Source: Octopus sinensis (Eukaryota). From it: 64,000 bases of DNA. Positions 40,501 to 61,961 of the stretch are shown piece after piece. Position numbers and translations under genes: made by a program. The stretch covers positions 93,248,001-93,312,000 of the forward strand of contig NC_042997.1 in assembly GCF_006345805.1 (NCBI RefSeq), in the 5' to 3' direction. The notes beneath the pieces are model-generated. The model searched no databases and had not been told where the DNA came from. It saw only the letters and a program-made list of their open reading frames with translations. How positions within the stretch are numbered: the first letter of the stretch is position 1; every line of letters starts with the position of its first letter.

Positions 40501-43500
40501 GGTTACAGGATGGAATTGTGACAAACAGTGTTTAGGAGGGTGTGCTTAAAGTACTGTTACAGCTGTCTCCTTCAATTTGGAATAACAAAAGTTCGTAGGT
40601 CAGCTTATTAGATTAAAGTAATAATATACTAAAATTACAATAATCTAAGACATTTGTTACATGATCAGAGGTGTTCCAGCCATGACCATCTCACCTTTTT
40701 TTCAGACTATGTTTAGAATTCATTATCCAATGTATCTTTCCTTTATCTAAGTTGTTAGAGTGAGATTTGAAGGTGTGTTGCTATTGTTTCTAGCAGGTTG
40801 AGCAACTATCTAAGCATTCCTTCAGCTTGTTATCATTGTTCTCAAAGAATTGGAATTGTGAGCTATATCTAAATATTTGCTAATATGTTCCAGATTTTTA
40901 GTTGGGAGAAACCTCCAGCAAATTCTAAACAAATGCTCTACATATCGTATGGAGCAAGATAACGTTTGATAATCTCCAGTCTTAACTAGTACTTTTATTT
41001 TTTGCATCACTGAACTAGTTTTCCAAGTTTTGGCTCCTTTTCAAAATTCTACAACAATTTCTGCAATGATAATTAGATTATCAACAGGATAACTGAGTGG
41101 TCTAAGGCACCAGACTCAAAGATAATATCCTTAACCAGAACAATGAGTATTCTGATCCACAACTGTGGACATGGGCTTGAATCCCACTTCAGACAAGCAT
41201 TCTTTTATAGGTTTGACAACTGATGTTGGTATGTTTATGTCCCTGTAACTTAGCGGTTTGGCAAAAGAAACTGATAGAATAAGTTCTAGGCTTACAAAGA
41301 ATAAGTCCTGGGGTTGATTTTTTTAACTAAACTCTTTAAGGTGGTGTTCCAGCATGGCCACAATCAAATGACTGAAACAAGTAAAAGAATATAAGTGTTC
41401 ACAAACTGTTCACTGGAGTGGCTGTGTGGTAAGAGATTTGCTTCCCAACCACATGGTCCTGGGTTCAGTCCCACTGCACAACATCTTGGGCAACCATAGT
41501 CTTGTAAGTGGATTTAATAGATGGAAACTGAAAGAAGCCTGTTGTATGTATCTGTGTGTGTGTTTGTCCCCCACCACTGCTTGACAGCAAGTGTTGATGT
41601 GTTTACAACCCCATGAGTTAGTGTTCGGTAAAAGAATGCGAGAATGAGTTCTATGGTTGATTTGTTCAACTAAAACTCTTCAAGGTTGTACTCCAGCATG
41701 GCCACAGTCTAATGACTGAAACAAGTAAAAGATGAAGAAAGTGGTTTGTTGAATGATCTAAACTGAACATTCACTTGTCCATTAAATTCCTTAGTAAATT
41801 AACTGTCAATTCTGCCTGGCTTGCTATATGCCTATAAAAGATTTTGACTTGCCTTAAGAAATTATACTTTCTTTTTATTCAGTTATTTATTTATATGTTT
41901 ATATATATTTATTTTATTAATTTCATTTAAATACAGGTTAGAGAAAATGGCTCAAAAACTGGCACCTATATTCACAGCTAAGCAGTCAATGTCATCCTTG
42001 AAAACTGTGGACAAGATCATAGATGCCTTGCAAAATATGGAAGGAGAAGATATTGAAGATATTCTGAGTAAATTAATTTATGAAATATTTTGTGGATTTT
42101 TTACATATGCAATTATCTAAACACGCACACAAAATACACATGCACATGCACACACACACACACACACATACACACACATATACATACACACACATGCACA
42201 TCCATAATTATATATATATGTATGTATATATATATATATAATATATATATATATATATATATATATATATATATACATGTGGAGGCACATGACCTTGGTT
42301 AGAGCAGCAGACTCGCGGTCGAGGGATCGCGGGTTCGAATCTAAGACCGGGCGCTATGTATGTTTATGAATGAAACACCTAAGCTCCACGTGGCTCCAGC
42401 AGAAGATAATGGCGAATTTCTGCTGACTCTTTCACCGCAACTTTCTCTCACTCTTTCCTCCTGCATCTTGCAACTCACCTGCGATGGACTGGCGTCCTGT
42501 CCAAGTGAGGAACCTATATACCAAAGAAACCAGGAAACTGGTCCTTATGGCTCAAGAAGGAACAAACATATATATACATAGGCACATGTCTGTGAGGTAA
42601 GAAGCTTACATCTCAATCACCTGGTTCCAGGGTCAGTCCCATTGCATGGGACCTTGGGCAGGTGTCGTCTACTATAGCCTCTGGCCGACCAAACCCTTGT
42701 GAGTGGATTTGGTAGATGGAAACTGAAAGAAGTTCATCATTTTTGATTCTCTCTCTGTTTATTTCCTTGTGCTCCTTTCTGTTGAAGAGTGTAGGTTCAA
42801 AACATAAGACTTTCACACATTACAAAGATGTTAAACTAAGGCATCTGTTTGTTATTTCTACACCTGTCTTCATCTTTTGTTTTTCTGTAAATTTCAGCTA
42901 ATATGTATGTTTATATATATATTATATATATATTATATATATATATATATATATATATACATTCAATATATATACATATACATACATATATATATTACAT
43001 ACATACATATATATATATATATATATATATATATAAAATATTATTTGAGACAAAACCATATTTTGCAAAACAAACAAGGAAAGACTTAATCAATACATAA
43101 AATTTAATAAATAGTCAAAAAAACCGCCACTACAATCGTTTCTTGTCTTGATCGACAATCTTCAGGTGGACTTCCAATCTAAAAAATCAAAATTTTAAAA
43201 TATAAAAATAATACTTTTAAATAATTAAAGTATAAATGAAAAAATATAAGTATATAATCCATATATAACCTATATATAATCCATATCGAAAATATAGACT
43301 AATTACCACGAATTCTAAAAAAAAAAAAAAAAAAAAAAACCATGATAAAACAAAACTCTTAAACACATAACGATAAAATCTCCCTTTGCTAAACTCTATA
43401 ACAAACCTATAAAGTAAACCCCCTAACCTAAACATTCACACACAATACACACACGTAAACCACAAACTCACGACTTATACACATACCTAACTAACTTATA

Positions 43501-61961: not shown

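Follow-up and report, generated by a model that had tools for sequence, protein, structure and literature searches.

Does a stretch of octopus DNA hold a transporter gene in which one piece of the protein has been repeated in tandem, exon by exon, and do all the copies belong to one message? The question is raised by 64,000 nucleotides (nt) of Octopus sinensis (RefSeq assembly GCF_006345805.1, contig NC_042997.1, positions 93,248,001 to 93,312,000 of the forward strand), referred to here at their full length as the window, in which the N-terminal exons of an ABCA transporter are followed by two blocks of four exons with the same series of intron phases. With a probability of roughly 0.88, we consider that the window contains the first 11 exons of a very large octopod ABCA gene whose first extracellular domain (ECD1) is built of tandem paralogous four-exon units. 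After the first transmembrane helix (TM1, exon 2) and the start of ECD1 (exon 3), the protein would continue as tandem copies of one unit of about 220 residues, each encoded by four exons. The first copy would be the counterpart of the single copy in human ABCA4 (residues ~102-292, including the lid at 138-271), and module 2, like the further copies in relatives, would be an old duplicate of the first. The 11 exons lie on the + strand between 25499 and 61961 with canonical AG/GT sites and encode the N-terminus of the transporter in 536 codons (1610 nt of coding sequence, that is 536 codons plus 2 nt). Positions are those of the window, and intron phases are given as start>end:

25499-25564, + strand: exon 1 (coding part), 66 nt, 0>0; ABCA N-terminal cytoplasmic stub, with an ATG, a 22-codon open reading frame (ORF) and a GTAAGT donor
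35495-35588, + strand: exon 2, 94 nt, 0>1; first transmembrane helix, splice sites read directly
40030-40156, + strand: exon 3, 127 nt, 1>2; conserved start of ECD1
41937-42067, + strand: module 1 exon a, 131 nt, 2>1; same size in Argonauta
48671-48801, + strand: module 1 exon b, 131 nt, 1>0; aligns to ABCA4 'GIRIRDILKDEETL...'
51535-51732, + strand: module 1 exon c, 198 nt, 0>0; Cys pair C198/C223
54206-54405, + strand: module 1 exon d, 200 nt, 0>2; same size in Argonauta, conserved DNA island
55967-56115, + strand: module 2 exon a, 149 nt, 2>1; same size in Argonauta, conserved DNA island
58319-58449, + strand: module 2 exon b, 131 nt, 1>0; within the unit-profile match at residues 338-477
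61021-61236, + strand: module 2 exon c, 216 nt, 0>0; Cys pair C427/C460
61795-61961, + strand: module 2 exon d, 167 nt, 0>2; size shared with Argonauta, in which a 140-nt exon, 2>1, comes next

The eight exons of modules 1 and 2 each keep a single frame open between an AG acceptor, with a pyrimidine-rich tract before it, and a GT donor, and their coordinates, lengths and phases match exactly those of an earlier note, made from the letters of the window alone, which had proposed a repeated four-exon module. The two blocks follow one another with phases 2>1, 1>0, 0>0 and 0>2 and measure 660 nt and 663 nt, both multiples of three, as the note had remarked. Each contains exactly two cysteines, both in the 0>0 exon as it had also described, so that one conserved pair is found per block, with the spacing of C427/C460 exceeding that of C198/C223 by 8 residues; five N-x-S/T sequons are present per module. 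The 536 codons, as the note had observed, do not contain the conserved C-terminal half of ECD1 (the '...ILYTP...' region), which is likewise not reached in the 1115-residue model of the Argonauta orthologue introduced below. The gene runs on past the end of the window, with its membrane and ATPase parts beyond it.

Relatives were retrieved by an exhaustive HMMER search with exon 3, which returned 24 proteins. Among them were a 1115-residue N-terminal fragment from the octopod Argonauta hians that is a clear orthologue (genome BAAFZT01; PMC12682272), a complete 2737-residue ABCA from the snail Bulinus truncatus, a 2355-residue fragment from the moth Eumeta variegata and a 6292-residue fragment from assembly GCA_041260155.1 in which tandem repeats of about 225 residues are visible by eye. 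One match, P0002, was an unrelated repeat protein and was set aside.

Judged by its N-terminal sequence, the window gene is an ABCA of the ABCA1/4/7/12/13 type, with a short stub, TM1 and an ECD1 opening that carries the Cys-rich 'AMPSAG...C..NN.C' motif. Exon 1 has the same length in Argonauta, Bulinus and GCA_041260155.1 and forms a conserved DNA island against Argonauta, while exon 2 (94 nt in those three, 91 nt in Eumeta) matches an ABCA1 N-terminus at a tblastn E of 2.5e-7. Exon 3 and module 1 together match human ABCA4 residues 55-261 (phmmer E 2.2e-15), the exon 3 part aligning from residue 55 on; weaker matches, also from residue 55, are seen to ABCA1 (E 3e-4) and ABCA7 (E 0.02). Counted along this alignment, the module 1 Cys pair falls on ABCA4 C205/C230, which lie inside lid residues 138-271. 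This segment has been described as a flexible apical lid of ECD1 that is unresolved in cryo-electron microscopy structures (bioRxiv 10.64898/2026.06.25.734683). The only stretch of ABCA4 that the full unit profile matches is residues 102-292 (E 3.6e-11), and thus the unit is single in ABCA4, in agreement with the earlier note. Module 2 alone gave no ABCA match in the PDB, and Pfam holds no family for module 1, module 2 or the unit, nor did any member of the unit alignment give a consistent Pfam match. Exons 1-6 measure 66, 94, 127-136, 131-143, 128-131 and 198 nt in the relatives that were mapped; those of ABCA4, in complementary DNA (cDNA) numbering, we take to be 66, 94, 142, 140, 128 and 198 nt. 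The ABCA4 exon phases cited in the earlier note agree with these presumed values, a literature check of the boundaries having found nothing.

The homology of the two window blocks is carried mainly by profile comparisons. In pairwise alignment, the two 131-nt b exons, which had been said to align, reach a Smith-Waterman score of 49 against 21 +/- 4.4 for shuffled sequences (z = 6.5; 0 of 5000 shuffles reach it), and the whole modules score 73 against 35 +/- 5.8, a value attained by 1 of 2000 shuffles. A starting hidden Markov model (HMM), built from 13 core repeats of the 6292-residue GCA_041260155.1 protein only, finds 27 units in that protein and matches window module 1 with an independent E-value (i-E) of 7e-6 (Z=1000) as well as the first modules of several relatives (i-E 3e-7 to 1e-3, Z=1000). 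After iteration, with every window sequence and Argonauta module 2 kept out of the training, the HMM matches residues 338-477, in window module 2, with 24.9 bits (i-E 8e-7), and the register is that of module 1. A unit profile trained without module 2 gives it 26.9 bits, as compared with -0.1 for the reversed sequence and a maximum of 10.6 for 3000 global and 3000 block shuffles. Profile-to-profile comparison with hhalign, in which the first-module alignment includes the ABCA4 segment, relates first modules to later modules with 98.9% probability (E 3.2e-17, 186 columns), and the module 2 pair to first modules with 84% (E 7e-6). In unit alignments of 21 and 31 units one Cys is invariant and the second is kept in at least 90%; window module 2 carries both, with its 8-residue insertion between them. 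These results, together with equal intron phases, support module 2 as a diverged paralogue of module 1. Apart from dispersed repeats the two blocks have no DNA similarity, and therefore the duplication is old, as the earlier note had supposed.

The Argonauta orthologue extends this picture beyond the window. When its protein is mapped to DNA, exons 1-11 measure 66, 94, 127, 131, 131, 198, 200, 149, 131, 216 and 167 nt, identical to those of the window, and the two proteins align without gaps at 61% identity. Outside dispersed repeats, the two loci resemble each other in DNA only in exon-sized islands, which coincide with 9 of the 11 exons. Exons 1-3, module 1 and module 2 have ratios of nonsynonymous to synonymous substitution rates (dN/dS) of 0.17, 0.18 and 0.42, respectively. 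The units are conserved under purifying selection between the two octopods. The islands and dN/dS values are the best available evidence on exons 8-11 and support the view that these exons are functional and part of the same gene. Exon c of module 1 (51535-51732) retains 89% protein identity to Argonauta, as compared with 44-64% for the other module exons, and the core of the first lid thus seems, from these alignments, to be far more constrained than the duplicated copies.

After exon 11, Argonauta continues, in the same phases, with exons of 140/125/215 nt (2>1, 1>0, 0>2), then 131/89/186/194 nt, then 107/140/186/~221 nt. The expectation of more repeats downstream was thereby borne out, with at least 3-4 further modules following module 2, including candidate b-, c- and d-type exons past the first gene model. 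The first of these further blocks (exons 12-14, locus 34157-36503) has only three exons, of 140, 125 and 215 nt, encoding 160 residues, and may be a degenerate or partly deleted module. The first model itself stops at a TGA that overlaps a GTGAGT donor (locus 46233-46240), where splicing would yield an exon of the expected phases (0>2); 7 kb downstream (locus 53666 onward) begins a second model, of 4510 residues, with no Pfam hits on record. The two models summed, the real Argonauta gene probably encodes at least 5625 residues.

A four-exon block with the same phases was found in all four relatives examined, Argonauta, Bulinus, Eumeta and GCA_041260155.1, and the module count called for in molluscan and other invertebrate relatives of the gene gave, outside the octopods:

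Bulinus truncatus (snail): 4 copies, in a complete 2737-residue transporter with all ABC domains
Eumeta variegata (moth): ~9 copies by phase pattern, with some a and b exons fused
GCA_041260155.1: 27 copies, in a 6292-residue, 111-exon model with a 4923-residue model within 250 bp after it

In Bulinus the conserved ECD1 half comes after the last block, whose final exon closes in phase 1, and the product carries ABC2_membrane_3, ABC_tran and R1_ABCA1 domains. In Eumeta only two units reach significant E-values with the unit HMM, and the conserved C-terminal half of ECD1 appears at about residue 2290 of the 2355-residue protein. ABC2_membrane_3 and ABC_tran are present in the downstream models of both Eumeta and GCA_041260155.1, the two models of the latter together exceeding 11,000 residues. 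The first block of GCA_041260155.1 measures 140, 128, 198 and 212 nt, and its neighboring copies are 80-88% identical across introns; between neighboring blocks, 2 kb align at 88% with a 1727-bp offset, introns included, which reads as the signature of recent unequal crossing-over. Taken together, these comparisons demonstrate the exon structure, the homology of the units and, in this one other lineage, a recent duplication of a whole block with its introns.

Two observations on these relatives stand apart from the module count. In the 27-module protein, the second module contains an inserted C-type lectin domain (Pfam Lectin_C on record) at exons 9-11 (residues ~371-654), and there the oversized exons 9-10 interrupt the four-exon pattern. 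For three of the four relatives, public annotation gives the gene as two neighboring models, namely for Argonauta (1115 + 4510 residues), GCA_041260155.1 (6292 + 4923 residues, split at locus 68767-69021) and Eumeta (2355 + 1329 residues, split at locus 34960-35942), which amounts to a systematic mis-annotation.

How could such arrays arise? A block with equal intron phase at both ends can multiply in tandem by unequal recombination. Every block here begins and ends in phase 2 and is therefore a multiple of 3 nt, so that unequal crossing-over between introns could add or remove blocks without breaking the frame. Animals could in this way differ in copy number, from 1 up to at least 27, and such phase-symmetric gain and loss would thus account both for the range of copy numbers and for the regularity of the arrays.

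Several results weigh against reading the locus as an array of homologous units. Taken one by one, the a, c and d exons show no significant pairwise similarity between modules 1 and 2, and thus the case for homology of the whole modules rests on profiles and exon structure; the third Argonauta module is not recognized by the unit HMM; and the profile of later units alone reaches ABCA4 at an E of only 0.17 in a PDB-wide search. An AlphaFold2 model of Argonauta module 2, made with the alignment of units, is all helical and weak (predicted local distance difference test 68.1, predicted template modeling score 0.42), and Foldseek of this weak model against the PDB, ABCA structures included, returned nothing below E = 1, a null result that is uninformative, in part because the ABCA4 lid is unresolved (bioRxiv 10.64898/2026.06.25.734683). 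The exon model, moreover, is a reading built on splice signals, phase continuity, conservation and computational gene models of relatives. One could argue from the three non-significant exon pairs, and from a protein identity of only about 20% between the modules, that the blocks are not homologous, and that chance, in extracellular sequence that is helical and alike in composition, accounts for the shared phases and the weak similarity. We give this almost no credence since the profile tests are significant, shuffles that preserve local composition never come near the observed scores, and the Cys pair and intron phases coincide in a pattern that recurs 4 to 27 times in other genomes. The profile similarity on which the earlier note had staked its proposal is thus present.

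That note had also foreseen that exons 8-11 might belong to another transcript or to a neighboring paralogue fragment rather than to the mRNA of exons 1-7. The gene models of relatives are imperfect and the gene is split in Argonauta, Eumeta and GCA_041260155.1, which lends the idea some support, yet we consider it very improbable: the exons lie on the same strand in unbroken phase (0>2 into 2>1) with no start or stop between them, in the Argonauta model the orthologues of exons 7 and 8, identical in size, adjoin within one coding sequence, and the same type of junction runs through 27 blocks in GCA_041260155.1. An unlikely arrangement, although one that the symmetry of every block (phase 2 to 2, multiple of 3) would permit by in-frame skipping, is that the blocks are true duplicates used as alternative cassettes, skipped or mutually exclusive, with fewer modules in the mature protein. 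The blocks bear no sequence mark of alternative use; they are strongly diverged and each is kept between octopods, which fits constitutive use, and the full-size form of ABCA13 is the main form in mouse (PMC7948424). We therefore retain the tandem array of paralogous units within one message.

What the array does can be framed from the features of the unit. The weak structure model predicts an all-helical unit in which short helices cluster around the Cys pair and long ones lie at either end. The sequons and Cys pair are in keeping with a glycosylated module on the extracellular or luminal side that has disulfide bonds, putatively C198-C223 and C427-C460, and each unit would then be a helical, disulfide-stabilized, glycosylated extracellular module. 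Repetition of such units would lengthen the lid and tunnel part of ECD1. The earlier note had suggested that an elongated ECD1 might handle different or bulkier lipids; as a rival to this idea, the array may serve in localization or partner binding.

The introns contain mobile elements. A Tc1/mariner-like transposon (62038-62926), in the intron right after exon 11, has perfect 18-nt inverted ends, ATATATACAGGGTGTCCC and GGGACACCCTGTATATAT, and an ORF on the - strand (62156-62758, 200 residues) with a DUF4817 helix-turn-helix match. The 6.6-kb intron between exons 4 and 5 holds a reverse-transcriptase fragment (44970-45548, + strand; Pfam RVT_1, E 2.9e-8), presumably a decayed retrotransposon. 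A short dispersed repeat occurs in both orientations, usually beside (TA)n microsatellites (for example at 43748-43861, 46153-46584, 46784-46906, 55392-55646, 59937-60057 and 63189-63320), and similar repeats make up most of the non-exon matches to the Argonauta locus.

It is important to understand the origin of oversized extracellular domains in ABCA transporters, since those with an oversized ECD1, ABCA13 above all, are linked to disease. An oversized ECD1 is known for ABCA2, ABCA12 and ABCA13, and the region has been described as mechanistically unexplored (PMC13161189). The N-terminal region of ABCA13 is described as not homologous to any known human protein and as devoid of well-conserved domains (PMC7948424); judging by the title of Prades 2002, as cited there, part of it lies on a 4.8-kb exon. 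Localization and lipid movement have been assayed for ABCA13 lacking this region (PMC7948424). In molluscs and an insect at least, copies of an ABCA4-type lid segment, with conserved intron phases and one Cys pair each, follow one another regularly to make up the oversized region; this suggests an origin for the huge domains of ABCA transporters. In the literature searchable here we found no description of the unit, of its exon-block repetition or of repeats in the ECD1 of ABCA12/13, which is not proof of absence. The unit is definable and could become a profile or domain family, the expansion and contraction of the array would have a simple genetic mechanism, and animals offer a natural copy series of 1, 4, ~9 and at least 27 for probing the effects of ECD1 length. 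More tentatively, at somewhat less than even odds, the ECD1 lid may be a self-contained, phase-symmetric cassette of four exons whose number changed in the course of animal evolution, from 1 copy (ABCA1/4/7) to at least 27 (in proteins of more than 11,000 residues), and the giant N-terminal regions of ABCA12/13 may be degenerate arrays of the same cassette. If true, this would give these regions their first structural and evolutionary definition and a rational route to their truncation and testing.

Compared with ABCA4, ABCA1 and ABCA7 (structures 7LKP, 5XJY and 8EDW), the window gene shares the N-terminal stub, TM1 and the start of ECD1, and its module 1 aligns with ABCA4 residues 102-292, including the lid Cys pair C205/C230. 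They differ in copy number, with one unit in ABCA4, at least two in the window gene, at least 5-6 in the Argonauta orthologue and up to 27 in other animals, and in what follows, as the ABCA4 unit leads to the conserved C-terminal half of ECD1, a half not reached in the 536 codons of the window or the 1115 residues of Argonauta. In ABCA13 and ABCA12, as in the octopod gene, TM1 is separated from the first membrane domain by a very long ECD1, and human ABCA13, at 5058 residues, comes close to the at least 5625 residues of the orthologous models (PMC7948424, PMC13161189). However, the ABCA13 region includes the 4.8-kb exon and is without described domains, whereas the octopod region is a regular array of four-exon units. 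With the symmetric-phase exon-block repeats of large extracellular and cytoskeletal proteins the arrays have in common that copy number varies by lineage and that young copies are similar across introns; there the repeated block is a single-exon, class 1-1 domain, while here it comprises four exons and is of class 2-2.

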